DNA from: Thalia democratica
Taxonomy: Eukaryota
DNA length: 64,000 bases
Direction: 5' to 3'
Assembly: GCA_965202585.1 (NCBI GenBank)
Contig: OZ241826.1
Coordinates: forward strand, 54,436,001-54,500,000
Of the stretch, positions 13,201 to 57,997 are shown one piece after another. The notes beneath the pieces are model-generated. The model was not told the origin of the DNA, ran no database searches, and saw only the letters and a list, made by a program, of their open reading frames with translations. The stretch's first letter is position 1, and the number at the start of each line of letters is the position of its first letter. The position numbers and the translations under genes are program-made.

Positions 13201-16200
13201 ATAAAAATTTGAATAAAATTTAATTATTATGTAAAACTTGTCCAAACTTTGGTTTTCACTTAATTACCAAAAGTATTAAGTAATCCTGGGCATGACGTTA
13301 AGCTGTTCTGGTGTATGACTCGATAACCGAAAGGTTTTTTGTAGACAAGGTCCTTGGACCAAACCTTTTGAGCGTATTTTTTGTCGTTCAATAACCAATA
13401 AACAATAATCCAAGTTAAAATAATTTTGTTGTATAAGATTTCTAAGTACTTCGAAATTAATAGATTCAATTTTTCTTAGAAATGTAGTTTAAAAAACTTA
13501 AAAATACGTTTAATATTACAAAAAATAAACTATACATGTTGTACAAACAAAAATAAGTAGTGAGTGTTTGCTACTATACTTAGTTTTTTTCAAAACAATA
13601 TCTACCTTTATTTACTATGGAAATAATAACTGATAAACATATCAGTTTTAAAAGTTAAAGTACATACTACAGTACAGCTTGTATAAAAGACCCGTTAAAT
13701 CTAAACTTTAAAATACTTATAACTCTAACACTCTCGTCGTTTAACTTCCAATGCCACTCAGCTGGATTTTGTTGCTTTATATCTAGTCGATTTTTGTATC
13801 CATTTGGCTTTTTCCTAATCAATAACATAAGATGACAATTTTGCACGTAAATCGCTATATGGTGTCGATTATGACCTTAAAAATATTTCTATTTTTTTAA
13901 GTTGTAGCTATTATATTATTAGTTTTTATAATGTTTATTAGAGAAATATAGCAATTAAATTTATAAAAGCTTATTTTTTTAAATGTTAGTGAACAAAAAC
14001 TTTGAAGTGTATTTATCAAAAAAAAGTTAACAAAATTGGATGAAAACTTAGAGTAAACATACTTTTTTAATTAGCTTCAAGAACTTTTTTCTACCCAATA
14101 TATAACTTTGCAAAAAAAATACAAAATATATGTCTATAATCTATTCATGTTTTACAAGAACTTTAGTCATTTAGAAATACCTGATTCATCTGATTTGCAC
14201 AAAATGGTTCGTTTCTCTCCTAGTTTAGATAAACTAGAATCAAAAAGTTCCATTGTAAACGAAATTTGTGTGGTACCATCCCAATCAATACTATTGAGAA
14301 AGGTAGACTTTCTGTCACTTAGTTTAGTAATAAAGTCTTTTTCAGTAAGCTGATAAGACTGACTTGAAGACGAATTCTATAAAGAAAATTTTTTAATGAC
14401 TACACTGCTTAGAGATGTGTTTTATTTACTAAAAAAAACTATATAACTAAAAAAAGTACAAAACATAAATGTATCACTTTAAGTATTCATATGTATATGA
14501 ATCTATTGTTTAAGTGAAAATAGTTTTTAGTAAGTACCAATACTCTAAATATTTATCAAACACTGCTCGTATTTTCGATTCTAAAATCACTTTGCAAGGT
14601 AAAAAACTACTAAACGTTTATTTATATAAAAACAACAACTTAATTAAAGCTCAGTTATTTCGCTATTAAATATATAAGAAAAAATAAAACTTACATTTGT
14701 CTTGTGAACGGATAAAATTTCACTTACATTTTTTCTTCTTGCTAAAATTTATTTGTTGATTACAATTAAAGCTTATTTAAAATTTTATAAACTTATAATT
14801 CAAGTTACAGCAATGACTAGTTTACGAAAAAGAATATTTTGAATGAATAATTTACCACAAGTTTGTTTAAGCAGCTGCGGGGAGCATTCAAAATTTTCTT
14901 TATGGTCAAACTGCAACCCTGCAGTAACTTCAACTTCTACCGACTCGTTAAAATTTGTGCAAGTCTCTAATTTCGGTAAATGCTTGATAATTTGAAAAAT
15001 TTTTTCGTTGGAATTTACTGGAATCACGGGCTCTAAATCTGAAATAAACGTTTTTTTCTGATTACTCTTTGCAAATACTAAATAATAGTAATACACTATT
15101 TAATACTAAGACCAAAAATGTGTAAACTACATTTAGTAGTTTATAACTTCTTATTACTTTTTAAAACTTAAACAATATTTTTCGATTTAAATGTAAAACT
15201 AATATTATTGTTGTTTCAGTATGTCGTGTAAGAAAACTCCCTTGAGAAAAAAAATTAACTGGCGATAGATTCAACGCTAAATTCAAGTTTATTTGAAAAA
15301 GCTACACAACAAACACATAATTTTAACTGTATTAAAGTTTAAGTACTTACAATATATTTTTCAGTTAGATATTTATTAAAAAAGCATTAAAGATATTTTT
15401 AGAATAAAAAATTCTAAAAGAATAGTCTTAAAACTTAGATCTGCTGCGCTGTAAAGTTTTTCCTTGACATGGCACTAAGATAAATAATATATGAGTTTTA
15501 AATTGCACAGTTATACTTGCTTACAATGTATAGTCGTCTCAAACCGTTTTTAGTAAATTTTTAATGCTTTTTAACGAGTAATAACGTATCACAATCCAAA
15601 ACAAAAAATCATTATTTAGAATTTTGAATAGTCTTTAAACTTTTATGTTTACTATAAATTCTTTAAGCTAAGTATAAGTGTAACAAATACTTAAACTTTA
15701 CAGTCTTTAAAAAACATGATTTATCACTATATTTAATAATCCAGTCTAATTTATGATTTATTATAACATATATTTTTCATACTTTAGAAAGTTGTTGAGA
15801 AAGGTATTCTCAAACATTTTAACCAATATACAAATAATTATTAAGACCTAAATTTTTACGATAAAAGTTGACTTATGTAAAATAATTTGTCAAATTCTAG
15901 TAATTTCCGTTTAAATAAAGAGTATTTTTGTTACGTTATAGTTTTATATTAAGATTAACTAAAAAATTAAATTTTTAAAGATAACAGTTACTTAAGCAGT
16001 TAAAAATTTGTTTTTATAAACGTATTAGTCCTGGACATGACGTTAAACTGATCTGGTGTATGACTCGATAACCGAAAGGTTTTTTTGTGCACCAGGTCCT
16101 TTGACCAAACTTTTTGAGCGTTTTTTGTCGTTCAAGATACAATATATACTACAAAACATGTTTTATTCAGTAAGTTTGTGTTAGTTTTCAAAAAAATATA

Positions 16201-18616
16201 CTTTATTTTTATATTACTATGCTTTTTTGTTATTTACTCCTTAAACCTTAAAAAAACTTTTATGAAACTAAAAAATACTTAAACTAACATTTTGTATTTG
16301 TAGAAGACTTAAATTAAATAAAAGTTAAACAGTAACTTAAATATATCTAAGTATACAGTGCTAATTTTCTGAAATATTTTTTATTTTAACGAGATAAATA
16401 CTATTAACAAAAATTAACTTACTTTTCCATCCAGGAATACATGGCTTTTTTATATATACTTCAATATTGTGAATTAATGAATTTTTACCCCTACAGTCTC
16501 TGGCCATCACTTCAATGTCAAACTTTTGATCAACATCAGAAACTTTTAAATACTGTAGTGAATATATTTCCCCTGTTTAAATATCTAACTTAGTAAAAAA
16601 AATAAACATTTTAAACTAAGTAATAGTATTTTAAAATGCTTCAAACTTAAAATATAAATACTTAAAAATTAGTTTTACATGTACAACTTATAACTATACA
16701 AGTCAAATACTGATATTTTAATTTCTCTTAACAAATGTTAGTATAATATCTTTAAACAATTAAAAGTGCGTATGTCAGCTGTTTTTTAATGCGGCAACTC
16801 GATTTAAAATTAGCTGAAAGACTCGCATACTTTTTATATTATAAACTAGCCTACAATTTTATATAGTAATGACTTTTCAGTAAACAAGCTAGAATAATAA
16901 AAAAAAATGCTTAGATTTTTTTTTTTTAAGTTTACAATTTTGTTTAATAAACTTGTTTATACTTTAGTTTTAATTTTGTGTATAATTATAGTAAACTGTT
17001 ATTGTTTTATAAATGTATAAACTACTAAAAGTAATAAATGCATTTCCTTTAAGCTTGTTACAAAACAGTTTTAAAATTATTTTTAGTAATTTTCAAAACG
17101 AAAATTACCTGTGTCAGAAATATTAAAATACTTTTGGTTGTTTATAATATGAAAACCACAAATTTTTTCACCACAGTCATCATCACGTGCTACAAGCCTT
17201 AGTAAAGAATCATTAACATTAATATTATCGTGAACAGTAATTGAAGATGGTGAATTAACAATAATTGGGTCGTGTTCATTGCTATCTATCACCTTCACTT
17301 GCACTTTTGATCTGAATTAAAGTAATTCACTCATATTTAACTTATCATTTCATACTAATTTTTTATGTATATAAAAATTAGTTACACAATAGTTTGCAGT
17401 AAAAGTAATTAACGAACATTCTACAATATTTTCAATTTTATATAATCACTTTTCCAACAGTTATAAAACACAGTTCGTACTTTTTTGATTTTTTTCTTCC
17501 TTTAGTTATTCCACTAGAGACTTTCCATCCACAATCGACAGCGGCAACGTAAAACTCGTAAGTTGATTGGTTTTTGCAACTCAGTAATCCAACATCATCC
17601 TTTAATTGGATGCTTGCCTGTCCCAAGCTGACATCTAAAACAAAAGCTCCGAACGGTAGCCATTTTCCATCCTTATTCGTCAGCTCAAAATCACAAATTT
17701 TACCTTTGCAGAAGGTTTATTTGATGAAATGGAATTTTACTTGGAGGTTATTAGTTGTTATATCTTGATAAGTTTAATTTTTTTTAGTTTAAAATTAAAT
17801 GATATCACAATTCTATCAAATTTTACAATACTTTATTGATTCTATTTAAGTTTAATAGTTTGAAACAAACGTCAAAACTGTTTACAAACACATTCTTTTT
17901 AATTTTTTTTTGTTCCGGCTTAGAACTTTAAAGAGAACTCAATTTTATTCTTAATACCTGAGTAGTTTGGTGAGTCTTTATCCTGGGCGAACAAAGGAGG
18001 GTTAAGGATAACATTCACAGTGTTTCCATCAATTACACCATGGTATTCCTTAGAAGATAACTGCGGTCGATGCCTATTTCTGTGACCTACAAGGATTTTT
18101 TAATATTTTTCATTTTTTAAATATTCTTTTGTAAAAAAAAGAAGTAAGTCAAAATAGTAAGCTATAATTATTTATTATTTTTAGACAAGGTTTAAAGATA
18201 CTTTTACTAAGTTTTTATTATAAATAATATATTTTTTAGATCCAATCTTAAATATTATTAAATAATAAAAAGTAAACTTCTTATTATTAATATAAGTTTA
18301 ACTTAGTTTTCATTACCTTTACGCTTTGTTAGCTTAGTAAAACCATAAAAAAAAATTCAATATGCGTTTTTTAATATCTATTCGCACAAAAAAAAGCTTT
18401 TTAAATAATAATTACTGCACAGTCACCTACTCTGCTTGATAAAACAGAAAGATAAAACAGAAAACTAAAGTTAACAAAGTTAGTTATAACCTCATAAAAA
18501 AAGTCATGTAAAATTAAAACAATCAGCTTTCTTTGAAATATTTATAATTATTATTTACCAGAGCAACTTAATATTCCTATGAGAAGCAAAACTGTTTTAA
18601 AAATCCTAGAATTCAT
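7250..18616 (-). CDS. CLSTN: Calsyntenin (alcadein): cadherin repeats, LamG-like domain, single transmembrane helix, about 1074 aa
   Basis: 19 exons with matching phases: 18616-18559 (signal peptide MNSRIFKTVLLLIGILSCS), 18086-17958, 17703-17481, 17311-17109, 16572-16423, 15301-15260, 15077-14856, 14741-14695, 14376-14181, 13875-13724 (or 13730), 12271-12100, 11761-11598, 11070-10940, 10880-10678, 10517-10374, 10019-9877, 9101-8906, 8771-8374, 7501-7250. Diagnostic motifs: YHGVI..LNPPLFAQDKD, AVDCG, CIPGW, TILCKSD..HNRHH, AEWHWKL, DDYPLH..VGAAWEG, CLTFCQEG, TM helix VPFVVTGICVVLLVVLAIAALI, MDWDDSAMTITVNP. Confidence 0.95.
9257..9675. mobile_element. MITE with ~20-bp imperfect TIRs (family also at 36779-37156 and about 42660-42989)
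   Basis: GGGTGCACGACTATTCAAATTC ... GATTTGAATTGTTATGTAACC. Confidence 0.6.
13284..13408 (+). repeat. Structured ~125-nt dispersed repeat, copy A (calsyntenin intron)
   Basis: TCCTGGGCATGACGTTAAGCTG..GGTGTATGACTCGATAACCGAAAGG..GGTCCTTGGACC..TTGAGCG..CGTTCAATAA; aligns by eye to five other copies. Confidence 0.9.
16028..16143 (+). repeat. Structured ~125-nt dispersed repeat, copy B (calsyntenin intron)
   Basis: GTCCTGGACATGACGTTAAACTGATCTGGTGTATGACTCGATAACCGAAAGG..TGCACCAGGTCCTTTGACC..TTGAGCG..CGTTCAA. Confidence 0.9.
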
Positions 18617-21600: not shown

Positions 21601-22350
21601 TTAAAAATCTAAAAAGAAAAGACATAAATGAATAACTAGAGGATTTTTGAATAGTTGCTGCACGCTTTAATTTGATGTAAAATTGAAAAGTATTTTGGGT
21701 AAGTTTATTTTCAGAAAATTAACCAATTGGCCGCATTTAAACTCATATAACTTCTAATAACTTTAACCAGAAAAAACAAAAATACTTTAAAAAAACAGTT
21801 ATATTTATTAGTTTGATGCAGTGGCGTAGTGTGGTATATTGGTCGGGGGTGCTTAATTTTTTTTTCTCAAAAAATCCCCTAAATTATACTTTTGTAACTA
21901 GCTATAAAAAGGTATTTTTATAAGAAATATATTTAAAATAAATTCATTAAGTAAAATAAGTTCGAAGTAACTGTCATATACTTATATATTACTAAATTAC
22001 ACAATTAAAATAGTATAAATTTCATTAGAATTACTTATACTTGCACAAATGTAAACTTACTAAATAAAAATTGTTTTTACTATTTACAGTAAACTTTATA
22101 TCTTTAAAAATGAATATATTCAATAAAACAAAAGTATCTGTTTTATTTACGAAAAAAATATCAATCTCTTTAATATACAGTACAACATTGATAACAGCAC
22201 CTCATTGCACATAACTTAAATAAAGTTACACAGAAGTTAAAGTAGACCAACTTTATAACTGTTATTACAATTTATTACAACTTTGTAAAATAGTTAAAAG
22301 TATACTTTTTAAATTTAATTTAATTTGAAAAATTGTAAGTTTTGAAAAAG

Positions 22351-22593
22351 TGGTTTGATGGCCGTTCTGAGAAACCAACGAATAAATACTTCTCGGCGAT
22401 TGGGCAACATTTGTTGGACAATCCTGAGTGTGTTAAAAGTTATAAAAAGGACAATTTTTCAGTCTTAGTGAGAGCGGAGAACTCTTTTCAATTGCATATT
22501 CTGGAAGCTTTATGTTTTTAATCTTTAAGGCCCAGTTTATGTAAGCAGAAAAAGTTCGTTTATCAAACTAGACTTTTTAAATCCTTATATTAG
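22351..22593 (+). mobile_element. Penelope-like retroelement remnant: C-terminal GIY-YIG endonuclease, one in-frame stop
   Basis: Translates to WFDGRSEKPTNKYFSAIGQHLLDNPECVKSYKKDNFSVLVRAENSFQLHILEALCF*SLRPSLCKQKKFVYQTRLFKSLY*. This matches the typical PLE tail SAIxQHL..F.IL..L.ILEA..I..P.LC.Q. Confidence 0.8.
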
Positions 22594-22838
22594 TAATTTT
22601 AGAGTAAATAGTTTCTTATTAAAATGTTATTTTTAAGTATAGTTTTTATTTTTATTTTTATCGCTTGTTTATTTAGACTGTTTTAATTCTAAGGAGTTTC
22701 ATTAGTATACCAAATTTTTTTAGCATAAGCACTTATTTAATTTTTAACATTTGATTATTACGTCATTTTATATTCTTAAACTTTAAACTTCAGTATGATT
22801 TTATTTCAATTTGTATTCATTCAAATTCAGTTAGAAAC

Positions 22839-22875
22839 TATTTCTGATGAGCCTTACTACGAAAGTACTAAAATA
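22839..22875 (+). ncRNA. Minimal type I hammerhead ribozyme motif (PLE-associated, stem II degenerate)
   Basis: TATTT-CTGATGA-GCCTTACTAC-GAAA-GTAC-TA-AAATA. Core boxes are intact, stem I is TATTT/AAATA and stem III is the palindrome GTAC. It lies about 250 nt downstream of the GIY-YIG stop. Confidence 0.65.
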
Positions 22876-23018
22876 AATTTAAAGAAAATGAAATGACTTA
22901 TAAATATTAAAACTTAAAAAACTGATTAAAAAAACACGCTTACATTTAAAAACAAAATTACTTCGTTATTAAAATGAATTCTCAGATAGAATTTTTATTG
23001 GATCTATTTTATTTATTT

Positions 23019-23133
23019 GTCCTGGACATGACTTTAAACTGTATCCTGGTGTATGACTCAATAACCGAAAGGTTTATCGTACACCAGGTCCTTGGACCAA
23101 ATATTTGAGCGTTTTTTTCGTTCAATAAACAAT
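23019..23133 (+). repeat. Structured ~125-nt dispersed repeat, copy C
   Basis: GTCCTGGACATGACTTTAAACTG..CTGGTGTATGACTCAATAACCGAAAGGTTTATCGTACACCAGGTCCTTGGACC..TTGAGCG..CGTTCAATAAACAATA. Confidence 0.9.
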
Positions 23134-23267
23134 ACTATTGGTTAAAATAATGCTTTAAATATCTACTTTTATGTGAATAAGGGTCTTAATAACTAAAATT
23201 TATATTCAGAATAAAAAGCACGTGATAGGCATAAACTTTTGCTTTGCCGGAGTAGTTTTAAATAAAT

Positions 23268-23565
23268 CAGGGTTCGGAAAACTGCGGCCCACGGGTCACA
23301 TGCGGTCCATGATAGGTACATACTGCAACCCGAGAATATGCAAATTAGACCCGCTAAAAAAAGTGTTTAAATTTACACAAGATATTCTGAGGTTGGATTG
23401 GAAGAGTAAAAATAAATGGTTTTAGTTTAGGTTAAATATACGGAGAATTTACACTACATATTTTAGGTATATTATGGAAAGTAAAGACTGAAACTACGAC
23501 TGTGACCCAAATTATTATAATTTTCGAAATTCGGGCTGCGACCATCAAATGCCTGTCGACTACTG
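23268..23565. mobile_element. hAT/Charlie-like MITE
   Basis: CAGGGTTCGGAAAACTGCGGCCCACGGG ... TGTCGACTACTG. The flanks AAATAAAT / CAATAACT resemble a decayed 8-bp TSD. Confidence 0.55.
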
Positions 23566-24061
23566 CAATAACTGTTTCATTGTGAGTTAAATTAATCTTT
23601 ATTTAGTTTACATCAATGTAAGTAAATGATGATAAAGCAGAATTGTTTTGAATATATTTTAATTTAAATTCCCCTATTATGAAAGAGTCCTCCCCTAATT
23701 TTATATAAATAATTCCTTTAATCAATATACAAAACCTTACCAAGTAAATTTGATATTCAATAAAACAACTCAATATGTCAAAAATTTGGATTTATATCAG
23801 CTGTTTGTGGTTTTAATTATTGTTCATTTATGATAAAAACTTCAGTATTAACTTTTTTTTCAACTATAAATGATTTATTTTGAGTTCAAATAAATTGTAG
23901 GTTGTTTGTTTCCTTTACTGTATGCTGGATCATATAACATTTTTTTAAGGGCCTGATGAAGTAACACCTGATATAGGTGAACTTACTTACAACAGGGTGG
24001 TCATAGGTAATGGAGTCCTGGAATATTATATAAAATGTCCTGATGGTGTATAGTTTATTGA

Positions 24062-24150
24062 ACAACAAGTTATACTCTCAGAACATTTGGTCCTAGGACC
24101 TGGTGCACAAAAAACCTTTTGCTTATCGAGTTGCATACCACAGATACCTT
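24062..24150 (-). repeat. Structured dispersed repeat, copy D (5'-truncated, inverted)
   Basis: The reverse complement reads TGGTATGCAACTCGATAAGCAAAAGGTTTTTTGTGCACCAGGTCCTAGGACCAAA. Confidence 0.8.
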
Positions 24151-24679
24151 TAAAAATCTTGTGAGGGACCGTGTAGGGGTTCTAATGACAGCTTTAAAAC
24201 TTGAGTTGAATGCTGTGAGATTGAAACCTAGTGGTGGACACATTATCAAAAAAAATCATATAAATGAAAAAGAAAAAGGAAAATCATTGAATTTTATCAA
24301 AACAGTTGGATAATCATGAAATTTAAATAAAAAAAATTAAATATCCGAACATTTTAAACACTATTCTATGATAAATTCTTAATTTTTTGATGTAAACAAA
24401 TAGATTGTTGCCTGAATAATGGTTCTGACTTTTTTTTTATCATTTTTGTTTTAGAAAAAATTATTTCTACTTTAAGCCATAAAATTATCTCACTTCATTT
24501 AAAATAAATCTTACTTTTTTCCATCTGAGCTATAAGATAAATTTACAAATTAACATAAATTAATTAACTACTCTTTATGTAAGATTCAATAATATTGAGA
24601 TCTCGTTAAGTGAGGTAAAGGTTGCGTGGGCAGCTTAATACAACTGACACACAAGATTGAATTAAAAATTTCTGGATAA

Positions 24680-25300
24680 AGCCATCCAGGGTCCAACATT
24701 TTTTTTACAAAAATTAACTTTGGCTTTTACATGAAAGCTTTAAATACAAACTAAAAGCCTGTTTTTTATAATAGAATTCAAAAATATCATTTAACGTTTG
24801 AGATATTTTATTTTTTGTAAAAAGTTTCCGACGCAAACATATGAATTGCAAATTTTTTGGGGTCAATTTTCTCAGAAATTAAAAAATTCACTAAAAATCT
24901 TTCTCCTCCTTCATTTTTCAAGCAATCTTCTTCAAATTTTCAGGAAATGTTCCTTATATTAATAGGAAAAAAAGTTACTTTAGAATTAATAAAATAAAAA
25001 TGTTATCATAAAAATTAAAAAAAAGTGTTTTTTTTCAAAGTAACTTTTTTTTTTTTTGTATAAATAATATAAGACTGAAAGTTTGAAGAAGATTGCCTGA
25101 AAAATGTAGGAGATAGATTTTAAATAAAATAGTCTTTTTTTGCTGTTTTAGTTTTCCATTCCATAGGGAACCTTTTATGCGGCCCAACTTTGAATAGTCA
25201 TATCTCAAAAAATAATTTGAATTTTTTAAAACAATAAAAAGCATCTACAAGCTTAGAAAAAGCTCTTTGAAATAAGATCAACTTGTAAAAAACATAAGTC
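24680..25300 (-). mobile_element. Kolobok-like non-autonomous element, same family, two different arms
   Basis: Shares TTTTCAGGAAATGTTCCTT, AATAAGATCAAC, CTAAAACAGCAAAAAAGACTATTT and GGGGTCAATTTTCTC blocks with 33250-33924 (inverted) and 30028-30709. It ends at TTAA 25301. Confidence 0.7.
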
Positions 25301-25443
25301 TTAATAGGATCTCTATCATTTTATCAGGAAGGCCATATCCACAAGGAAACATCTCATGAGAAACAGAAAGGACACTGACTGCAATTTTGGTCGAGTCCAG
25401 GACCCTGTTGTGTGAAAAGGGGACCCTGCTCTTGTCGCTTAAA

Positions 25444-27284
25444 CAGGGTTGCCACTCGGTCAGGAAAAGTCAGGAAATCAGGAAAAGTCAGGAAAAATTT
25501 GAAAAAATTACAAAAGTCAGGAAAAGTCAGGAAAAAATGGGGGGTTTTGAAAAAAGTCAGGAAAAGTCAGGAAATTTGATAAAATAAAATAAAAAAGTCA
25601 GATTTTTTCAGTTTAAATTTACGAAATTCCTTGTTTTCCAAAGCCTTTAAGTGGTAAAAGTTAATTAAAAGTCCTTAAAGTCAGAAAAAAATTTCAAAAT
25701 TTTCCTAAAAATTTACAAAAATATTTAGTTTTATTTCCAATGCCTTCAGCTGGTATAAATTAGTAAAATATCCTTTATAATACTGCAAAAATTTTCTATT
25801 AACATATTGAACAAGTACCCTACTTGAACAAGCAGATTTTGTAAGCTTTTTAGTATTTATGATCTGTAGCAAGGACACTTCCATAGTGAAACTGTGATAT
25901 ATACACAAAAGTTTATCTAGCATAATTTTAGAATCAAAGAGTTTTTTGTTCAAGTAAACAATTGAGTTCTTTATAACTAAGCAGTTAGTTTAGTATTTGA
26001 TGTAACAAGTTAATGTGTATACTTTACCTCTTTATAATTTTTTCAAATTTGTTTAAATTTTTTAAATAAGTTATAAGAGAGGTATAATATGCCAAGATTA
26101 AATTTACTTATTATTTGTATTTTTTGGAGAGTAACTCAAGTTTTTAAAGTATATAAGAGTATATTTATTTGTTACAAACTTTATACTAAATGATAAGAGG
26201 AAATATTTTATACAACAGATATATAGTTTACTTTTTTATGTCTTTTTTTACAGTCACTTAAGTATATTCTTTTTTATTCTTTATTTAACGATTTTATATT
26301 AAATATTGGGTGTATTTTATTGAACTAAGTGAACAATTTATATAAGTAAAACATGTTTTAAGTAAATACTTTTTATTACTAGATATTTTTAACTTAAACG
26401 CTAAATTTTTATCACTAGATTTATTTTACAACTTATATGCTAAATCTGACTAAAGTTTACTTTTTTAGTTAAATAAATAGCTTATTACTGATAGAGAGTA
26501 AATTTATTTTTTGTATTAAGGTGTCAGATTAGATTTATTTGTACAGAAAACTAACACTTTATGTATTGGGTTTTTAAACTCAGACTAACCATTGTTATTT
26601 TTTTCAGATCAGCATTTAATTGTTTTTTTATATTTTAATTATGCCAAAGTTTACATATTTCAAGAATTCTTGGCTTTCTGAAAAAGATTTTTCTGAATGA
26701 AAGTTCCTTATTAATTTAAGGTTTTAATTGTAAAAGTTCCTTATATGTCGTTTCGTTCATTTAGATACATTTATACTAGGAAATTCTAAAAAATTGTGTT
26801 CTTTATTGTTTTAAGGTTTCAACTGTAAAAACTTGTTATTGTTTTAAGATTTTAGTTGTGAAAGTTTGTTATTAATTCAAGGTTTTAATTGTAAAAGTTC
26901 CTTATATGTCGTTTGTTTATCTAGATACATTTATGCTAGGATTTGCTAAAAAATTGTTTTGTTTTTCAGACAAGCTGTGTTTATAAGGTAAAAATACAAG
27001 AATTTTGCTAATAGAGCTGTTTATTACAAACATCAATCATACACAGATGGTTTAAGTGATGTACTGGAAGTTTGATTATAGAATTCAGCAAAAAACTATT
27101 GTTTAGAACCTGTATTAAAGTTAGATTGGAAGTTTTATATAGTTTTAAGTGTTAGATTATGTATTTTAGAATAAGTCTAGTTTAAGAGTTTGATTTAGAA
27201 AAGTCAGGAAAACTTTGGTAAAAAGTCAGGAAAAAGTCAGGAAAAGTCAGGAAATTCTTCTCAGCTTTTTGAGTGGCAACCATG
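25444..27284. mobile_element. 1.84-kb non-autonomous TIR transposon (hAT-like) with 6-bp TSD
   Basis: TIRs CAGGGTTGCCACTC / GAGTGGCAACCATG (one mismatch), with CTTAAA on both flanks. AAAAGTCAGG direct repeats occur at both ends, and there is an internal ~50-bp duplication at about 26730 and 26890. No transposase ORF. Confidence 0.85.
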
Positions 27285-29424: not shown

Positions 29425-32400
29425 ATGAACAAGGTTCAATCAATGTTTGGCCGTCATTTTTCAACTGCTGCTGGACAAGAAATAGAGCAAGCAACTAATT
29501 TATCCGATTTAAATTGGAACAATAAAGAAGAAAAGACTAACCAATTTACAAGAGTTTGCAGAACTATTGATTCCTATTCAGATGGTGCTAAGGATGCTAT
29601 TAAAGCCTTTAGGAAAAGACTGAATGGAAACAAAAATTTTAGCCAAGTAGAGTTATCAGTGTCATTGCTAGATTTTTGTGTAAAACATCTGGGAGTTAAT
29701 TTTCATCTTCTAGTAGGAAGAAGGGATTTTGCTGGCGATGTATTATTGACTTTGCTATCGTCTAAATCTCAATATCCATCCAATATAAAACAAATAGTGT
29801 TAGGCATAATTAAAATGTTGGCAGAAACCTATAAGCATAGCAATGTAGAAATGAGTGATGTCATAGCTATTTACAATGATTTATTAGATCACAGATATGA
29901 GTTTCCAAAAACAAACAAACTAAATGTTTCTCTTTCTAGCAATGAACAGAATTCCTACTCAAGTTCAAGTGGCAGCTCTTCACTGGTTCGCCCAGCTCAA
30001 CAAGGTCTGATATACTTTTAGTATTAAGGGCATAGGGGGGGGTAAACACCCTTTTTTGGTTTTTGATCTTATTTTATATAGTTTTTACTAAGCTACAAGA
30101 TGCTTTTTACAGATTTAAAAATTTCAAAATAATTTTTGAGATATAGCCAGTCAAAGTCGGAGGCAACAACAGGTTCCTTATGGGAGGCGCAAACTAAAAC
30201 AGCAAAAATAGACTATTTCACTAAAAATCTATCTTCTCCTACGTTTTTTGAGATAACTACCTCAAATTTTCAGGAAATGTTCCTTGATATTTTTAGAAAA
30301 TTCTGTCGGAACAGAATTTAAAGAAATTAAAAAATAAAAATTTTATATAAAAAATAAACAAAAAAAACAGTTTTTTTTTATTTTTTTTATTATAAATTTT
30401 TTATTTTTTAATTTTTTTAAATTCTGTTCCGACAGAATTTTCTAAATATATCAAGGAACATTTCCTGAAAATTTGAGGTAGTTATCTCAAAAAACGTAGG
30501 AGGAGATAGATTTTTAGTGATTTCTAGTTATTTGCAGTTTTAGTTTGCGCCTCCCATAAGGAACCTGTTGTTGCCTCCGACTTTGACTGGCTATATCTTA
30601 AAAATTATTTTGAAATTTTTAAATCTGTAAAAAGCATCTTGTAGCTTAGTAAAAACTATATAAAATAAGATCAAAAACCAAAAAAGGGTGTTTACCCCCC
30701 CCTATGCCCTTAATTATTGTTTTAGATGTTTAAAAAACTAAAAAAACTATTTGAATTAATTTTTTGAAGTTATGTTTAAATAAAAGTTCTATTTTATTGA
30801 TAATACAAGTTAATTAATGTTAGTTTAATAATTGAATAATGTTTATTATTTTAAAGTATACAAGTTTCATAAATATTTTATGTGTTTATTTTATTGTATT
30901 TATTTGCAATTTAGAACCACTTTTATTACTGTTCTTTGTTAAGTATTATAATTTTTATACTATATTAACTATTGTAAAAAGTAATCAAAGACAACTTTCT
31001 AATTCAAGCAAAATTTTTGTTAGGGTATCAGTGTAACCACACAGTCAGGTCTTTTAGGCTTGTTTAAAAAAATTTGAGGTCCATGCTGACTCAGGATAAT
31101 GTAATTGGTTTTTATACACTAAAATTAGTTTAACAATTTTTAATAGAATTAGAATAGCCTAAATATAAAAATAAAAAACTGGCATTAGTATTCAAAATTA
31201 TTATAGTTTAATTATGTTTATTTTACACTTTTCAGGCTAGTTTTAAATTTCAAAAAAACTCAAGAAAGCTCAGGCTTTTTTTTTTCAAATTGTTTGAAAA
31301 ACTCTGTCTAATTTAAAGTTTGTTCCTAAATATCTAGCAAATTTTTATGAATTCATTATTTTTGTCTTTAATTATTTTTGTATAGACTTTCTATTTTCTT
31401 GTTTCTTTTATTACTTTATCCATTACTTAAGCTGGATTAACTAAAAAAAAATCAGTCTTTAATTCTTACTTTTTTTCATTTTATAATTAACTGAGGCTAG
31501 TTTTGGTCACTTAGACTGACCTTTTTGCATAAAAGAATGACAACCCTGACTTTTACAAAATTATGTTTTTCAGTGATATTGAATATAAAATATGCAAGAA
31601 AATGTTTACAGTCACACTCTTTGTCATGTTTAAATAAAACATAAGTATATATAAACTTTAGGGTAATAGAAAATTACTTTGAACGTTTAAATTATTTTAA
31701 TGGTATTTTAATATACTCAGCATACATCATAGTGACTAAGACTAGTTTTGATCATTCAGGATCGTTTTTTGCTGGGTGAAGGACAACCATGTAGTATTCT
31801 TAGGATTTTTTTTAAAGACCATTTTCAAACCTTAATATGCACTAGTTACTTAAATGATTTTAAAAACTCTATTATTTATATAAAAATAGTGTTGTAAAGT
31901 CTTCACTAAAAATTTTTTCAATGGGCAACAAGCTTATTTTATTTTTTAGAAATGTACTAAATATCAGCTGTATGCTAGTTTATAAAAAAATATTTCTAAA
32001 ATGCTTTTAAATCCTCACGTTGAAGAGTTTTCAGATATATTTGTTTATTAGTTTTAGATAAACTTAAAATCAATTTCGAATCTAGACTAAAGTTTTAAAG
32101 TTCATCTAAATTTTTGCTGTAAATAGATGATGAAAATTTAGTTTAAATAAGATATTTTTTGAGAATATGACTAAAAGTTCTTTAAGGATCAAGATGTTGC
32201 TTTTTTTTTTATTAAATGCTCATCTCTAATATTATTTTTAAAGAAGTAGGCACATTGATATTACATGTAAGTCAGAAAGTTCAAAATGAAAATGTAAAAG
32301 TTTTATAGTTTGATTCTCAAGCTTATTTAAGATTTGTTATACTTTTTTATTAAAGAAAAGTAATTGGATACTTTAAACTATGCTCTACAAATAACTCAGC

Positions 32401-35209
32401 AAGTACCTAAAAGTTTGTTTATTAAATCACTAATATGGTCAGTATTTTATTTTGAAAGCTAATCATCGAATTTAATTGACTTTGATAAAGTTTTAATTAT
32501 ATAATTTATTTATAGTTAATTTCTATTTTTATCAGAATTTGATATTAACTTTAATTTTCATTGTGCATTCTGATTCATATTAAAAAAATCATTTCAAAGT
32601 AACATTTTAAATTAAGCTTTAGCATTTAATTTATTTATAACTCGCAAAAATATTTCTACTATCAATTACTATTCTACTAGCTTTAAACCTTATAATCCAT
32701 TTTAAAATTTCTTATATTTCCAAGTATGTCTCTGCTACTTTAATTTAATGTACCACTAGATTAGTACTTAGGCTAAAAACTTAATGTATGTATATAATAT
32801 TGGTAAAAATTTTACATAAGTTCTATAGACCATTTTAGTGATAGCTACTTTTTTACTGACACAAGTTGTTTTTTTCTGTATAGCTGATGTTCGGCTGTAA
32901 TAATCTTTTTAAGTTTACAAAACAGCAAAGTAGTTTACTTTTTTAATAAAAAGTTCTTAATGAACATTTTTTTTAGCTTTACTTTTTTATTTGTATATAA
33001 ATTTAAGCTAAATTATTTTTAGTAGGTAAAATTATTCCCCCTGGCCAACCAATACAAGTAAACCAGAAACAGTTGCTTAAATTACAAAAAGACTTGTCCG
33101 TTGTTGAAGGAAATGTAAAAGTTTTTAGTGATATGTTGACTCACATTGACCCTGTCGGAGGAGATCAACAAGATATCCAACTTATGGGAGAGTTAAACAG
33201 AACCTGCAGGTATTTTTTATGTTTGTTTTGAATTTAAAAAAAGTGAGAGTACACATAATGGGGGGTAAGCCATGTTTTTCACAAGTTGATCTTATTTTGT
33301 AGAGTTTTTACTAAGCTTTAAAAAAACTAAGTTGCTTTTTACAATTTAAAAAAACTCAAATTAATTTTTGAGATATGACTGGTCAAAGTTGAGCCACATA
33401 ATAGCTTCCTTATAGGGAAGGAAAACTAAAACAGCAAAAAAGACTATTTTGTTTAAAATCTGTATCCTCCTACAATTATCAAGCGATCTTCTTCAAACTT
33501 TGAGAGTCTAATCTTTATACAATAACTAAAATAGATTACTTTAAATTTCAAAAAAAATTGAGTAAAAATACCTTAAAAAAAGGCTTTTTTTTTAGTTTTT
33601 GTGGTAAAAATGTTATTTTTAATAATTTAAAATTCATAGGAAACGTTTTTTCCTTATAATGTAAGGAATATTTCCTGAAAATTTGAATAAGATTGCTTGA
33701 AAAATGAAGGAGGAGATATATTTTTAGTGATTAAGTTTCCGAGAAAATTGACCCCAAAAAGTTTTCGGTCCATACGTTTGTATCGGAAAATTTTTTACAA
33801 AAGATAAAATATCTCAAAAGTTAATTGATACTTTTGAATTCTATAAAAGCTAGCTTGTAGTTTATACTTAAAGCTTTCAAATAAATGCCAAAATTATTTT
33901 AAATGTGTTGGACCCCATATGGCCTTAAAAAGATCCGAGCGAAACAAGTTCACTTGAATATATAATAACAACAAACAAACAGTATTCCTTCTTTATTACA
34001 CTAACACATGTTTCTGTGTGGTAACGGGTTATCACATATCAACGGAGCTCTGTAAAAAACACTATTTAGATTTTACATAGTATTTATTAAATAGTTGTTA
34101 CATAATTACCTAGTAAGTAGTATTTATTTTTAACAGAGCTCCGTTGAAGTGTTTTAACCTGTTAAGACACAGAAACATGTCTTAGTGTAATAAAGAAAGA
34201 AACTGTTTATTTTATTGTTATTATATTTAAAATAGCTTTAATTATCTTGCTTAAAAGATGTAGGTGATAACTGTATTTTTTAAACATGTTTACTAATTAA
34301 AACGAGTTCAATTTAAATGTAAAACTATTTCGAACTAGTCAAGATAATTTTTTCCATTTTTCTAATTAGTAAGTACATTACAAAAGAACAAGTACAGCTT
34401 AAGTTGTTAGAATTTATTTTTTGATAGTTTAAGAGAAAAAAAAGGCCTAAGTTCAATAACTTAAAATAACTTTTCTAAGTTGAGTACTAGTTAATTTTTA
34501 ATAAATAAAATTAACTTCAAAAAGTTATAAGCATGCTTACTTTTTTTTTGTACATTAAAAGAAAAAAGCTCTATTCGATTAGTTACTTAATTTGTGTAAT
34601 TGCAGGTCTATGCAGCAGAGAATAGTTGAGTTGATCGGCCAAGTGCAAAACGACGATGTTGTAGTTGAGCTGTTGCGCATCAACGATGAGTTGAACAACG
34701 TTTTTATGCGTTACGACCGCTTCGAGCGCTACTCGAATCCGCAAAACCCTCAGCAGGCAGCAGAAGCACCGATCAACACCACGACACTGCCTGTTGTTGC
34801 TACTGAACCTCCCCCAAGCTATAATGATTCCGAAAATTTCACCCCAGCACCAGCGGTCACCAACGACCTTATTGACCTCGGAATTGACAACTCTGTCCCC
34901 GAACAGCCAGCCAGCAACAATGAACTGGCGCTCGGTGATTTTTCCAAGCTAAGTTTGCAGCCCGAGCCAGCTGCTGATATCGAAGAAAGAGTGAAGAACT
35001 TTTCAGGAAACCAGAGCGAATTGGACGAAGTGAAGGAAATAGAAAGTTGGCTGAACAGCGACCAGCAGTTTGGTGGTCAGCAAGCGGAAGTGGACGACTT
35101 CAGCAATTTTTTGTCGCAGAGGGCGACCACTAGTCAGCCGAATCAAGCTGATGCTGGTAACAACAGCAAAGTTCCCACCGCTGACCCTAGCAGCCAATCC
35201 TTGCTCTGA
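29425..35209 (+). CDS. TOM1: TOM1/TOM1L-family VHS-GAT endosomal adaptor, 455 aa
   Basis: Exons 29425-30004, 33026-33209 and 34606-35209; phases 1 and 2 match. VHS: [31 protein letters not shown]: [49 protein letters not shown]. Tail: [21 protein letters not shown]. Confidence 0.93.
30028..30709. mobile_element. 682-bp foldback non-autonomous DNA transposon, TTAA-flanked (Kolobok-like), in TOM1 intron 1
   Basis: TTAA|GGGCATAGGGGGGGTAAACACCC ... GGGTGTTTACCCCCCCCTATGCCC|TTAA. The two arms of about 310 bp are near-perfect reverse complements. A TTAA duplication with RR..YY termini is the Kolobok pattern; piggyBac has CCC..GGG termini. Confidence 0.8.
31029..31548. mobile_element. Degenerate CAGGGTT-family element in TOM1 intron 1
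   Basis: Starts CAGTGTAACCA and ends TGACAACCCTG, with repeated (C)TCAGGCTAG motifs as in the 28400 copy. Confidence 0.45.
33250..33924 (+). mobile_element. Kolobok-like non-autonomous element in TOM1 intron 2
   Basis: The left part matches the arm of 30028-30709. The right part ends GGACCCCATATGGCC|TTAA. Confidence 0.7.
33959..34226. mobile_element. Unclassified foldback MITE with ~110-bp TIRs (partial copy at about 41375-41440)
   Basis: TATATAATAACA..CTTTATTACACTAACACATGTTTCTGTG..AACGGAGCTCTGT mirrored by ACAGAGCTCCGTT..CACAGAAACATGTCTTAGTGTAATAAAG..TGTTATTATAT. Confidence 0.75.
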
Positions 35210-38460: not shown

Positions 38461-40385
38461 CAATAACTAATGTGTAAGTTTGTTAAATAGATTTTCGTTG
38501 ATTACTTTTCAGTTCTACTAACTTTTCTACAGACTAGGGGTGTAGGTACAACATACGGCCCAGCAGAGAGAATACAGCCGGCAAATAATAAATGTTAAGT
38601 ACAAACTAGATATTGAAATAATAACTCAAAAACACTTAAGATGTATGATATTAATTAAATTGAAGTAAGTTGTGGTGCTAGTTTGTTATAATGTGCTCTT
38701 GTAGAGTCTATGGAAAACAGTTGTAAACATTGTCTAATGACTTAACAATATTCACAAAAACAAACTCTACAAAACACGATGGATAATTTAGTTATACTGC
38801 TAAACTATCTTTACAGGATATACTGATTTTTTATATAGTTAAAAAGCTTTTCTTCTATATTATCAATGTTTTTTTTTTAAGTCTTATAGTTTAACTTTCA
38901 GAAATTTCATACTCTAAATTTGGCATAAATATTTAACTAATATAATGATGTTTCTAAGAAAGAGGTGTTTTTAAGTGACCAATTTTGAGAAGATTTTGAT
39001 TATTGATTTATAAAATATTTGCTCTTTAGGTTTTTAGTATTAAATATATAAAAAATTGTAGCATTTTCACTCAAAAGTTTCTTGTTAATTAAATTTGCTA
39101 AAAAAAGCACCAAATCCAACAATATTAGAAATTAACATTTTTTTAAACTGTACTTAACTATAAAAAAAAGAACTTTCAATTTAAGAAGAAGAAGTTTAGT
39201 CTAACTAACTCATGAGGAATTACCATTGGGCTGAAATCTATAAACTAGTTTGACTTTTTGTGTTAATAAAATTAAATGATTTTTTGTTAAATAAAATTTT
39301 TGAACTTTTAGAGCACCAGTTTATTTTGTTCAATAAACTATTATAAACAAATTACTTGAAATTATTTAGCATAGGCTCTCATAATTATCTAAAAGTGAAA
39401 AATGTACAACACATTAAGATCAAGCATTAAAACATAGCAGACTACATATGATAAATATAAATTAAAATATATAGTAACTAAAAAAATTAGAAGAAAAAAC
39501 TTTTTTTTTATAAACCACCATTCTGTTTCTTACTAAAAACCAATATTAGCAAAGAATTTCTTCAAAAAAACTCGTTTGGTTTGTCTGATACAAAGTGACT
39601 TAGTCTGCCTGATGTGTACTAATGAGGACGAAGCCAAGTTGCGTGAACTGTTGTTGAAGACCGTGCAGTCTAGTGCTTGTATAACTTTACGAATACAACT
39701 TCAACCAAACTCTATGTCTAACATTTTCCTTAATACGACTGAGGCTGTCACATCTGTCTCGCCGACTAGAGATGCTGCTTACCCCTAAAATACCCTCTTA
39801 AATTTGTTGATATTGAATAATTTAAGATTGTATTGAAATTTTTTTTTTAATAGTTCTAGCCTTATAAGTTTAAGCAACTATATTCTGAAATTTAAAGATT
39901 AGTTTTCTTAGCTGTTTTGATGTTTATATAAAGAACATATCTAATAAAGTTAAAGTTACAAAAATGAACATTATAAACATACAAAAGAAAATATGGTACA
40001 GTACAGACGAAGTTTATTTTTTTAGTTTTATTGAAAAATAAAATTAAAGTGTTATGAGTATAAAAACTTAACTTTAAAAACAGTATACTCTTTTTGTCTC
40101 TAAATAACTTAATTAGTTTATTATTTTTGTAAATTTATTTAATTGAAGGTAATTTGTTTTAAACATATTTGTTTGTTTTTTTATTGCAACTATCATAGAG
40201 ATAACATATCATTTTGGAATTTTGTAACTATCTTTTATATTTTGTATGGTACTAAAATTTACAGTTTGAAGTGGTTTTTAAAGAAAGTAAAAACTAAAAA
40301 AAATAGATCCAAATGGTCTAATAGTACTTAAAAAGATTATAAACAAAATATTTACACACCCTGAAGAATTAATAGGTATCCAAAA

Positions 40386-40475
40386 GGTGTGCGACTCGAT
40401 AACTGAAAGGTTTTATCGTGCACCAGGTATTAGGACCAAACATTTTCAGCTCTTTTTTTTGTCGTTAAATTAAAT
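40386..40475 (+). repeat. Structured dispersed repeat, copy E (5'-truncated)
   Basis: GGTGTGCGACTCGATAACTGAAAGGTTTTATCGTGCACCAGGTATTAGGACCAAA. Confidence 0.85.
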
Positions 40476-41919
40476 AAGATAAATTAATTGAACAATATCA
40501 AAAAAAGAAAAACTAAATAGTACTTTTAAACAATGCAACTTTAATAAAACCAGTAGATTTTTTTGCTCAGATTTTAGTGTTTAATATAAGTTTAAACTAG
40601 TATAAATAGCTTCAACAACTATAACATGCACTTTTATAAAAGTTTCTGATCTTATCTAAAATACGACTACCTTAATAAAAACACAAGTCAAAAATTGTAA
40701 AACGTTAAAAAAGGTCTCTTTCATAATAGAGTTAAAAGAAGTGGCGTCGCGTGGTCTTTTTGCTAAGGGGTGCAGCAGATTGACATTGTCAAACTAAAAA
40801 AACCCCTAGTTAGAAAAATTTAAATCATAAAGTTAATATGAAAAGATAGACAACTTTTTTGAGAAAAAGTATTTAAACTTGTTTAAATAAATCTAAAATA
40901 AAATATAAAAAGTTAACATACTTTATACCTCTAATTACCATTACCTTTTCTTTATAACTTTACCTTCTTTTTAATTTAAGTTCCATGAAAGTTTCTGTAT
41001 TTGCACAATTATAAATTTACTAACTCAAAATTAACACTTAACTAACTAGTAATCAAAAACAACATTTTAAATATAAAAGACTTTGTGCAAACAATTTTAT
41101 AAAAAATTTACAAGGTTATTAAGATCTAGTTAAAAAAAACTATCTAAACATCTTAAACATTTTATATCAGTAACAAAATAAAAGGTAAATTTTGTTCAGA
41201 CTTAATATAAAAGTTATTAAACAACCTACAAGTAATAAAATCTAATAACAAAAAATACATATACAAAAAATGTTAAATTTAAATTATTTGATATCTAAAT
41301 CTTATTCAATATCTAAACTTTTCAATAACTTATAAAAAAACTAAAAAAAAGAAGTTTAGTCAGACTTTATTACACTAACTTTATTACACTAACACATATT
41401 TCTGTGTGTTAACGGGTTATATATTCCATTATCATTATATGTTCCAGTGACTTGTTTCGCTAGGATCTGTATTAACAAACGCTTAAATTTATATTTTAAA
41501 TAGTTATCTAATAACAACAATTTTTATCTGAAACAACTAACTTTTACTACAAATGAAAAAGTTAAGTTAAATCAGAATTAGTTTTAGTATATGTACTACA
41601 TATTAACACAAAAAGTAAAATCTATGTAATAGTTGACTATTTGCAAAATAACAAAATTAAAATTTGTAAAATAACCTATAAGTATAATATCTAATCAATA
41701 AAAAACTAAGTTTAGTTAAAAGTCTACAAAATATGATCAAGCTGTAAAAACTTATTTTATTAATGCTTTAATATCAATTTAAATTTCAAGTCAACCCATA
41801 CAGTAATCATGAAGTAGTGCCAAAGTTCTTTATAAGTACAAATTTTAGTTGTTTGATCTGAATTTTAATACTTGAAATAAAACTAAGGCAACAACAGATT
41901 CTGTATGTAAGGTGTTTAA

Positions 41920-45250: not shown

Positions 45251-45279
45251 TTGCGTAATGACGTCATTCGATACGTCAT
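45251..45279. promoter_or_regulatory. Cluster of bZIP sites (C/EBP-PAR-type site, palindromic CRE, half CRE)
   Basis: TTGCGTAA overlapping ATGACGTCAT, followed by TACGTCAT, within a CpG-containing island in AT-rich DNA. Confidence 0.45.
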
Positions 45280-55200: not shown

Positions 55201-55509
55201 TTAACTATAAGTACTATTTTTAAGTTCTATGTTGAACAGTTGTAGAAAACAATTATTTTTTTATTATCAGTGCTTTAATTTCTATTTGTAGAAAACACCG
55301 CTGTTTTTCTATAAATAAACTAATTTTTAACTTGTTAAACTGTGTATTAAACAACGCATACAAATGTATATTAACTATTTTTTAAACTTTTTAAGTAATG
55401 CTAATTTAAATACAGTTGTTTAATAATCTTTGTAGTTTTATAGTAAAAAATAAACTCGATACTTAAATTAAGTACAACATACCTTGTTCTTAACAGTGTA
55501 TGGACCCAT
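46225..55509 (-). CDS. RBMS: RBMS/MSSP (Drosophila Shep-like) two-RRM RNA/ssDNA-binding protein
   Basis: Exons 55509-55483, 54078-53878, 53761-53592, 52713-52655, 52179-52088, 50157-49997, 49776-49697, 49563-49392, 49295-49250, 49168-49103, 48752(or 48735)-48631, 46380-46225 (TAG). Motifs: [80 protein letters not shown]. One junction in the low-complexity tail is ambiguous (see findings). Confidence 0.93.
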
Positions 55510-55599
55510 TTTTCTTATAAACTTAAAGTTATTTTGATGATCTCTCCTTGCAAGTAGTTGATGAAATAAAACTAAAACAAGTTATACTGTACTTTATTG

Positions 55600-55690
55600 G
55601 ACACGTATGCAGAAAAAAGAAGTTCTCTCGCTGAACAAGGTGAAATCTAGTTGAATTAAATCTACTAGGTGGCGCTAATAGTATACTTTT
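55600..55690 (-). promoter_or_regulatory. Probable RBMS proximal promoter
   Basis: Locally GC-richer segment 90-180 nt upstream of the ATG at 55509. It contains CACGTA and CTACTAGGTGGCGCTA. Confidence 0.4.
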
Positions 55691-57903
55691 TTGGCTGTTT
55701 ACTATTTTTTTACAAAAGTTCTAACAATTTTATATTACAAGTTTACTTTAATAATAAAAAATATTCTTGTTAGAAATATATTATTTAAACTTATATTAAT
55801 ATCTTAAACCTTAAAAAAATCATTTAAGGTTTAGCAAATCTTAAGATATCTATTTTATGACATGTAGTCTTATTACGTAAATATAGAACATTTTATATTT
55901 GTTCTTAACTTACACAATCCCGGCTATTAAAATGATGACTTTTTTTAAATTGCTTACATAGTATAGTTAATATGATATAAAAATAATTGCTTTATGAAAG
56001 AAAGATGTTTTTTGGCGACTAAAAAAAATAAATGTTTTACTTTTTAGTATTTTGGTTTAATTATATTGTATTTTAGGTTTTTTTATTATCATTAGCTTGT
56101 TTTAAAAAAATCTTAAATTTTTTTAATGTATAAATATTCGAAGTGAAACAGATGAATTACAGCTTAAGAAATTACATAAATCCAAGTTACAACCAAGTGA
56201 GAGGTGAGTTTTACATAAGAAATTTTAAAATCTCATTAAACAAATAAAACAAGGTTAACTTAAAAGTATAATAAATAAATGAAATAAAAAAGTAGAACAA
56301 ATAAAAACCTAAATTTTTCAAAGCTCAGTTTTATGCCTTTTTTTGATTAGAAAGTTTTTTTTTTATTGTAATAATTTAAGTGTCAATAGATGTACTGAAA
56401 TAACTTTAGTTAATAATTGCTGAATAGGTGTTGAAAAAAAGTTTAAAATTTTTTTTAACTTTGCTAAGTTATTATTAAACCAAATTAAACATCTATCTAC
56501 ATCATATTAAATATAAGTTAAAGTAACAACTACATTTTTAAACAACCATATAAGTTTAGTTTAGAAGTAATTTTTAAAAAAATTGTGTTTTTTTTTCGGA
56601 AAAATAAATTAACAGCACGTTAACGAAATTAAACAACAAAAACTTTGCAAAAATATTAACAAAATTAAAACATACTATTTATATAGTTTTAATTTATCAA
56701 TTTTATGTTAAACTTTTTGGCTCGCAATTTTAATAAGTAGTGATTCTATTATTGAAATTTGCTACATATTTTTATCTATATCATATTATAGTTTTTTGCA
56801 AACTTTGAATTGTTCAAAATTTATAAATTATTGGTTTTTAGGCTTTGTTTTATAGTATCAAATACTCTTTTTTTTAACCCTTTATTCTCGTCTAACATGA
56901 ATAAGTTTAGATGTGCAACTTATGTAGTTATTCACGCAATTAAAACATATGCAACAATGCTTATTTCGTATAAAGATAGAAACTTATATAACAATATTTC
57001 ACTCAATTAACAAATGAGATCCTCAGTTATAATTTATACCTTATTCTATTTAACTGAGATATATTATAACTAACGACCCTAATAATGCAATTTATTAATT
57101 GAGTGAAAAAATGCTTTTTTTAATTTGTTGTTCAATAAAATTGTAATTCTTCTCCTTGGAACGAGCATAAAGTTATTGTTATAGAAAAATTTAATACATA
57201 TGTATATACTAAAGTTTATTTACAAAATGTATACAAAAGCAACTATACTCAGGTTTCACATTTCACTTTTCAGGTCTTAAGTAATTGTTAATTCATAGCA
57301 GGGGCGTGTTTTGACTGGTTTCCTGTACAAACCCTGAAAAAACTGGATTAAAAGTAATAACTAAGCGATTGTTTATGCTTTTCTTTTGAAATAGTCTACT
57401 AAAAAATCATATCTATTTGTTAACTTTTTAATATTAAATAAAACTAAATTTTAACTTTTTAAAGAACCACTTCAAAAATGACGTAATTATATAAGTTGTT
57501 TTGTAAAAAAGTATATATTATCTATTTAAAAAAAAACATAATTACGAACGGAGCACATTTAAAAAAGAAAACTTTTCATTCTAATTTAACCAATCAAAAG
57601 TTTAAAAAAAATGCTATTATTGAATGACTTTACAACTCCAAGTGTTTCATTTTTAACTACGAAACCTTTGACATAATCATTCTTTTACAACATTAGACAA
57701 ACTGTAGTTTTATTTGAATTTTTTCACCAAACTGTAAAATAACTGTTCACGCCTGTACTAGTTTGTTATAAAATTACACTTATTATTTATTTAAATTTTA
57801 CTTTTACCTAAATTATTCTAACTGGGACTGTTTGACTAAGTAAATTATTTACATATAATTGAATATGTCTTTCTGTTATTATATTATATTTCTGTAGAAT
57901 ATG

Positions 57904-57997
57904 TGGTGTACGACTCGATAACCGAAAGGTACCTTTAACCCTGGTCCTTAGACCAAAATTTTTGAGCGCATTTTTCTATTGTTCAATAAACAATAAT
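57904..57997 (+). repeat. Structured dispersed repeat, copy F (5'-truncated, internally altered)
   Basis: TGGTGTACGACTCGATAACCGAAAGG..GGTCCTTAGACC..TTGAGCG..TGTTCAATAAACAATAA. Confidence 0.85.

Follow-up and report, generated by a model that had tools for sequence, protein, structure and literature searches.

A three-hairpin repeat in the window

The DNA analysed here is a stretch of 64,000 nucleotides from Thalia democratica (contig OZ241826.1, positions 54,436,001 to 54,500,000), called the window in the following; coordinates refer to it unless another locus is named. It lies in an assembly of 802 Mb with a GC content of ~25%. Copies of a short repeat unit with three hairpins are present in the window, and the identity and origin of this unit are the subject of this work. 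An earlier note on the same DNA had reported six copies. All six are present and align over ~116 nt, and each of them was recovered by a profile of the full-length unit (nhmmer, E 1.9e-37 to 2.6e-17). A seventh copy, absent from the earlier note, was found as well. The copies, together with the hairpins of the copy at 23019, are:

8172 to 8246, + strand: seventh copy, decayed and 5′-truncated (nhmmer match 8172-8244, E 2.3e-10)
13283 to 13409, + strand: full-length stand-alone unit of the intermediate subfamily, with the 5′ end ATCCTGGGC and a 3′ end with three CAATAAN heptamers (profile match 13284-13399)
16028 to 16144, + strand: full-length stand-alone unit of the intermediate subfamily (profile match 16028-16143)
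23019 to 23140, + strand: young type-A stand-alone unit with the 5′ palindrome GTCCTGGAC, three hairpins and a AATAAACAATA tail followed by CTATTG (profile match 23019-23133)
23046 to 23087, + strand: hairpin 1 of the 23019 copy (minimum free energy (MFE) fold)
23087 to 23098, + strand: hairpin 2 of the 23019 copy, GGTC-CTTG-GACC (RNAalifold consensus; helix 3, 96% paired)
23105 to 23125, + strand: hairpin 3 of the 23019 copy, TTGAGCG, a U-rich loop and CGTTCAA, then the terminal repeat AATAAAC... (MFE fold, RNAalifold)
24049 to 24169, − strand: old type-B full-length stand-alone unit, decayed (profile match 24169-24051)
40359 to 40483, + strand: old type-B unit, 5′ part strongly diverged (profile match 40368-40472)
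57904 to 57995, + strand: copy with hairpins 1-3 and the tail, without the 5′ palindrome segment (profile match 57904-57994)

Some boundaries had to be revised. The copy placed at 40386 by the earlier note is real, but it is full-length, if diverged, and starts near 40359, with hairpin 1 beginning at 40386. The statement that three full copies begin at GTCCTGGAC is exact for those at 16028 and 23019, but not for the copy at 13283/4 with its variant 5′ end. The copy listed as 24062(−) is also full-length, in addition to the three counted as such before.

Every copy in the window stands alone, i.e. without the body of the long interspersed nuclear element (LINE) described below. The flank 5′ of the 23019 copy is unrelated to the 3′ untranslated region (UTR) of the LINE. 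The DNA upstream of the 24062(−) copy was searched for a LINE body and is single-copy, an alternate haplotype contig aside. The DNA upstream of the 57904 copy is an unrelated repeat of ~480 bp, which stops short of the unit; this copy is either 5′-truncated or descended from a tail variant. The ~480-bp repeat (57400-57881) is interspersed, with more than 1500 first-look candidates at 70-76% identity, and stops 23 nt before the 57904 copy; it is unrelated to the LINE tail. A small contig, G000:C96:73180-77784 (L002, L032), is 91-98% identical to ~22.5-24.8 kb of the window, both units included. It is probably the alternate haplotype and is therefore uninformative on empty sites.

Genome-wide occurrence and ends of the unit

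With a 122-nt query, 3744 first-look candidates were obtained genome-wide, and the 40 scored matches were 93-100% identical. The best matches share a sharp 5′ end, (T)GTCCTGGAC, and end in AATAAACAATA, at times running on into CTATTG. The terminus is made of CAATAAA-like heptamers and is ragged, with copies stopping within about 8 nt of one another. At least three subfamilies of the unit were distinguished: an older B, an intermediate and a young A. A search for target-site duplications (TSDs) in 31 units showed no excess over mismatched-flank controls at any length, and no terminal inverted repeats (TIRs) were found in the aligned units. When an 18-nt core was scanned in metagenomes, it gave 33 matches, all of them due to chance and in unrelated contigs.

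Neighbouring units are often no more than a few hundred bases apart (L053:1511-1744, L014:1080-1858, L054:1197-2031). In L053 they are arranged head-to-tail, the older unit beginning where the young one ends. Existing copies or AT-rich tracts may be preferred as targets, which could account for this clustering.

Link to a LINE

The sequence upstream of the unit was common to 3 of the 28 best genomic loci, and the downstream sequence was not common. The block shared upstream is repetitive, too. Its 11 other copies that were examined all end in the unit, and most copies of the block extend yet further upstream. Among 12 of the longer copies the 3′ end is common, whereas the 5′ ends fall at 11 points over 1.5 kb, which is the signature of 5′-truncated non-LTR (long terminal repeat) retrotransposons. 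Walking upstream, the copies were homologous for a further 1.5 kb containing reverse-transcriptase (RT) frames. One copy (L073:3-1772) carries an open frame of 589 codons with an RVT_1 domain (E 1.2e-35), which ends about 1.45 kb before the tail and, in a comparison with solved structures, matches the ORF2 proteins of L1 and R2. When the genome was searched at the protein level, LINE copies with open frames of 1039-1125 aa were obtained. Database relatives (42-65% identity) carry Exo_endo_phos and RVT_1 domains, and in one of them, 65% identical, the same open reading frame (ORF) also encodes a PHD finger at the N-terminus. An architecture of PHD finger, endonuclease and RT has been reported for some CR1/L2 subgroups (PMC4120745). 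Judged by these domains in its relatives, the partner is probably a LINE of the AP-endonuclease (APE) type and would belong to a CR1/L2-like clade.

We are confident that the ~116-nt unit is the 3′-terminal module of a ~1.5-kb 3′ UTR of an RT-encoding LINE, which probably encodes an endonuclease as well and is probably of CR1/L2 type. Among the identities that the earlier note had listed, this bears out the 'headless SINE/LINE 3′ tail' (SINE, short interspersed nuclear element): longer copies are contiguous with an RT ORF, and most copies are tails without a promoter head. An autonomous partner sharing the 3′ hairpins, for which that note had advised a search, thus exists as a LINE with an RT ORF; the other identities on its list found no support. 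The note had also named a match to a known transposable element (TE) family as grounds for giving up its proposal. In substance the LINE link is such a match.

The LINE occurs with at least three variants of its 3′ end. Lineage 1 (L061, L062, L058-L068) ends in a type-A unit, and the region specific to this lineage reaches ~280 nt beyond the unit on its upstream side. Lineage 2 (L070-L077), with copies 93-98% identical, is young and includes the copies with the long open frames. Its tail (L073:3213-3327) is diverged and lacks GTCCTGGAC, and its terminus is a variable ATT run. A third tail variant (L047, L007) differs just upstream of hairpin 1; unique DNA lies upstream of the variant copy in L007. 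All three hairpins are kept in all of the LINE tail variants. Elsewhere in the LINE 3′ UTR there is an internal tandem duplication of ~150 bp (L061:742-1042; L070, element strand 1823-2166), and L070 also has an insertion of ~190 bp containing a 136-bp inverted repeat.

Support for the three-hairpin fold

A consensus of 14 units computed with RNAalifold gave the same three conserved hairpins as had been described before. Hairpin 1 of the 23019 copy has an outer stem (23046-23056 with 23077-23087) around AACC-GAAA-GGTT (23063-23074), which carries a GNRA tetraloop. The + strand of this copy folds with −35.7 kcal/mol and z = −4.7 compared to shuffles, versus z = −1.25 for the − strand. Many of the single-side changes in the stems are indeed G-U pairs on the + strand, as the earlier note had read them, which fits an RNA signal.

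In an alignment of 20 sequences, 85.8% of the cells were paired, compared to 31-49% after the partners had been slid by 1-3 columns. Changes on both sides were found in eight pairs, a number reached by 3 of 500 shuffles, and in 14 cells, which none of the 500 shuffles reached. In helices 1 and 2 of hairpin 1, five pairs show changes on both sides. All three hairpins persist in the tail of the sister lineage (lineage 2). From lineage 1 to lineage 2, the inner stem of hairpin 1 changes from A-U to G-C and the tetraloop from GAAA to GAGA, a GNRA loop in both cases. In the rebuilt outer stem of hairpin 1, both arms carry several changes, and there is a bulge. In hairpin 3 the closing pair changes from G-C to A-U and the stem is longer.

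The tail thus consists of 3′ stem-loops with compensatory changes followed by short terminal repeats, as expected for LINEs of the stringent type. Stem-loops, terminal repeats and the sharing of tails between LINEs and SINEs are the described anatomy of this type (PMC3747384, PMC5729268). The ragged heptamer 3′ end and the absence of TSDs above chance would also match a 'stringent' LINE, in which the 3′ stem-loops are recognised by the element's own enzyme.

DNA-level elements, host RNA genes and other candidates

The earlier note had found no tRNA A/B boxes, TIRs, TSDs or known ribozyme core; ARAGORN, the aligned units, the flank comparisons and Rfam likewise showed none. No tRNA-like gene was detected by ARAGORN in the window. 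An Rfam scan of the whole window at the gathering thresholds gave 0 matches, and at E <= 10 the unit gave only three chance-level matches to bacterial small RNAs.

A single-strand-mobilised DNA element (Helitron/Helentron or IS200/IS605-like), with subterminal hairpins acting as DNA signals, had been among the candidates of the earlier note. A hairpin does lie about 10 nt from the 3′ end, and the lack of TIRs and TSDs would suit such an element. However, the termini are (T)GTCC... and ...CAATA rather than TC...CTRR, the 3′ end is ragged, and the G-U pairs speak for RNA over DNA. The 5′ truncation at many points and the continuity with an RT ORF also argue against it: the autonomous partner is a LINE and not a Rep/helicase element. 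We consider this explanation the most improbable of all. A miniature inverted-repeat (MITE) or other TIR transposon was rejected as well, since there are no TIRs and the flanks match no better than mismatched controls.

Nearly as improbable is a family of host structured non-coding RNA genes, for example a small RNA encoded in many gene copies. The strong strand-specific fold and the occurrence of units in marine metatranscriptome contigs would be in line with it. Against it, the copies are decaying neutrally, truncated, scattered in both orientations and linked to a LINE, and no Rfam family matches.

Known self-cleaving ribozymes (hammerhead, HDV-like, twister, hatchet and pistol; HDV, hepatitis delta virus) gave no match to their family covariance models. 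Threading an HDV-like fold by eye would require breaking the covariation-supported hairpin 1, and this fold was rejected. The unit was also rejected as a SINE in the strict sense: it has no RNA polymerase III (pol III) promoter (none by ARAGORN, none by Rfam at E <= 10) and carries T6 and T8 runs on the folded strand. It does have the 3′ tail in common with a partner LINE that is expected of a SINE.

Excess of stand-alone units in one lineage

The first 23 nt of type-A units occur exactly 263 times in the genome. The 9-mer of the LINE UTR that lies directly before the type-A start was found exactly in 22 of these 263 cases and with one mismatch in 9 more. Since so few type-A starts are preceded by this 9-mer, and with divergence allowed for, about 14% of the young type-A units are LINE-attached and about 86% stand alone. 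The two groups show no diagnostic substitution, and their divergence from the consensus is about equal (3.3% for stand-alone units, 3.7% for LINE-attached tails).

Lineage 2 provides a control. A 24-mer from its tail occurs 98 times in the genome and a 24-mer ~64 nt upstream 70 times, and the 40 best matches to a query of the tail and the 63 bases before it all continue into the UTR. These counts indicate that there is no comparable stand-alone excess in lineage 2. The excess goes with the tail variant that bears the 28-nt 5′ palindrome segment.

Information on the 5′ end of the template came from the flanks of stand-alone units. A T, as in the LINE (TT), occupies position −1 in 30 of 39 units and position −2 in 25 of 39, whereas position −3 is unlike the LINE. 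This would mean that the stand-alone units derive from an RNA starting 0-2 nt upstream of G1, the first base of GTCCTGGAC.

Proposed mechanism and origin of the sharp 5′ end

We propose that the LINE protein attaches to its own RNA at the three stem-loops of the tail and that target-primed reverse transcription begins within the terminal CAATAAA-like repeats, which would be the reason for the ragged 3′ ends. Copying would then proceed toward the 5′ end and yield full or randomly 5′-truncated LINE copies. A tail-only RNA of ~118 nt, which would begin at (U)UGUCCUGGAC, could be copied in trans by the same LINE enzyme to give the large non-autonomous stand-alone population. In our preferred reading, to which we lean without strong conviction, the 5′ end of the unit is set by a start site or a processing site within the 3′ UTR of the LINE, and the units are dead on arrival. 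Self-propagating master units with a promoter of their own are a possible but less probable source. A pol III origin of the 5′ end is unlikely because there are no A/B boxes and there are T6 and T8 runs on the folded strand.

Several points weigh against the LINE-tail interpretation and its mechanism. The covariation sample consists largely of decayed copies, and the clean compensatory changes come from few lineage-level comparisons. The AP-endonuclease is known from relatives, since the part of this genome's LINE that was read is its 3′ half. Neither an empty site nor a joint removing a unit was found in the runs of the organism, i.e. in DNA unitigs that break at repeats. Marine metatranscriptome contigs hold A- and B-type units, some after sequence resembling the LINE UTR, but they cannot show the ends of a ~118-nt transcript, and DNA carry-over is possible. 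Finally, among roughly 14 B or intermediate units seen incidentally, none was LINE-attached.

This last observation would also be expected if the stand-alone units were an independent SINE-like lineage (B, then intermediate, then A) that has its own promoter and parasitises the LINE via the common tail. LINE lineage 1 may then have gained its terminal module from the units by template switching. The succession of unit subfamilies points in the same direction, as does the lack of the 5′ segment in the currently young LINE lineage. Other observations are difficult to reconcile with such a lineage. There are no A/B boxes and there is no similarity to tRNA, 5S or 7SL RNA, and pol III would stop at the T6 and T8 runs. 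In addition, type-A units and LINE-attached tails cannot be told apart by substitutions or by divergence, and the region specific to lineage 1 does not end at the unit boundary but passes it. We regard this explanation as tenable, although clearly the less probable one.

The sharp 5′ end might instead arise at the RNA level, through an event in the LINE 3′ UTR that releases a stable, mobilisable tail RNA. Such an event could be self-cleavage, cutting by a host endonuclease guided by the fold, or stalling of a 5′-3′ exonuclease at a structured domain. About 86% of the 5′ ends lie within ~3 nt of one another, and the excess is missing in the sister lineage without the GTCCTGGAC segment. Moreover, pairing between the 5′ palindrome and the internal GTCCTTGGAC at hairpin 2 could close a domain. 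However, this long-range pairing appears in the single-sequence MFE fold only and not in the consensus, where the 5′ 30 nt of the unit are unpaired (RNAalifold), and its bases are invariant, so that covariation lends it no support. No ribozyme or exonuclease-resistant RNA family matched in Rfam at E <= 10, and the 5′ end varies by 1-2 nt, which is not expected of a ribozyme cutting at a single bond. Overall, we consider an RNA-level event rather improbable.

For these reasons, namely the missing model match, a supported fold without the 5′ 30 nt and an end ragged by 1-2 nt, a ribozyme origin in particular is unlikely, and the self-cleaving RNA suggested in the earlier note found no support. 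A little more doubtful still is the specific proposal that the 28 nt at the 5′ end, which include the GTCCTGGAC palindrome, act as a processing or decay-stall signal and free the ~118-nt tail RNA for frequent copying by the LINE enzyme. If true, such a signal in a LINE 3′ UTR would constitute a promoter-free route to short retroposons.

Comparison with known elements

The repeat is explained as a LINE 3′ recognition tail together with tail-only retrocopies, which is ordinary mobile-element biology apart from the very sharp 5′ end. Like the tails of 'stringent' LINEs (CR1, and L2 elements such as eel UnaL2) and of their SINEs, it has a stem-loop region in the 3′ UTR followed by short repeats. 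As with these LINEs, the same tail is found on non-autonomous elements and 5′ truncation is heavy. In contrast to the single hairpin of CR1 and UnaL2 tails, there are three hairpins over ~90 nt. The terminal repeat is a CAATAAA-like heptamer, and the short elements have no tRNA, 5S or 7SL head, which is also unlike those systems. With the canonical SINEs derived from tRNA, 7SL or 5S RNA, the units share that they are short, abundant, non-autonomous and mobilised by a LINE via a common tail. They differ in having no internal pol III promoter, and in having internal T6 and T8 runs.

A closer parallel may be Maque of Anopheles gambiae, reportedly described by Tu in 2001 as a very short interspersed element that resembles the 3′ end of a non-LTR retrotransposon and has no pol III promoter. 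In contrast to what is reported of Maque, the parent LINE is identified here, and the unit is longer, structured and tied at its 5′ end to a palindrome segment. In some LINEs (R2, L1Tc) the 5′ end carries an HDV-like ribozyme, and these ribozymes match Rfam models. They resemble the present case in that an RNA structure borne by a LINE defines the 5′ end of an RNA. The unit, on the other hand, is located at the 3′ end, matches no model and has a supported fold that does not include its 5′ end.

The candidate 'new structured or self-cleaving RNA' is thus struck off and is named instead as a LINE recognition tail with tail-only copies. The three or more natural tail variants that preserve the fold offer a system for studying the RNA recognition of a stringent LINE enzyme. 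The sister lineages, whose proteins are nearly the same and whose stand-alone shares are about five-fold apart, represent a natural experiment on promoter-less short retroposons. Annotators of this repeat-rich genome should mask the family as being derived from a LINE.

Other features of the window

Other high-copy repeats occupy 21879-23018 and 24637-26400, where the summed word depth in DNA runs is ~10^5 compared to ~60 for unique DNA; the 23019 unit adjoins one of them. A repeat of ~62-74 nt at 24677-24750 has many copies genome-wide at 91-98% identity. Exon-like ORFs at 29425-30021 and 34592-35209 carry VHS (E 3.9e-17) and GAT (E 2.2e-12) domains, which suggests a TOM1/GGA-like gene. The first of these exon-like ORFs was also found in marine metatranscriptome contigs.

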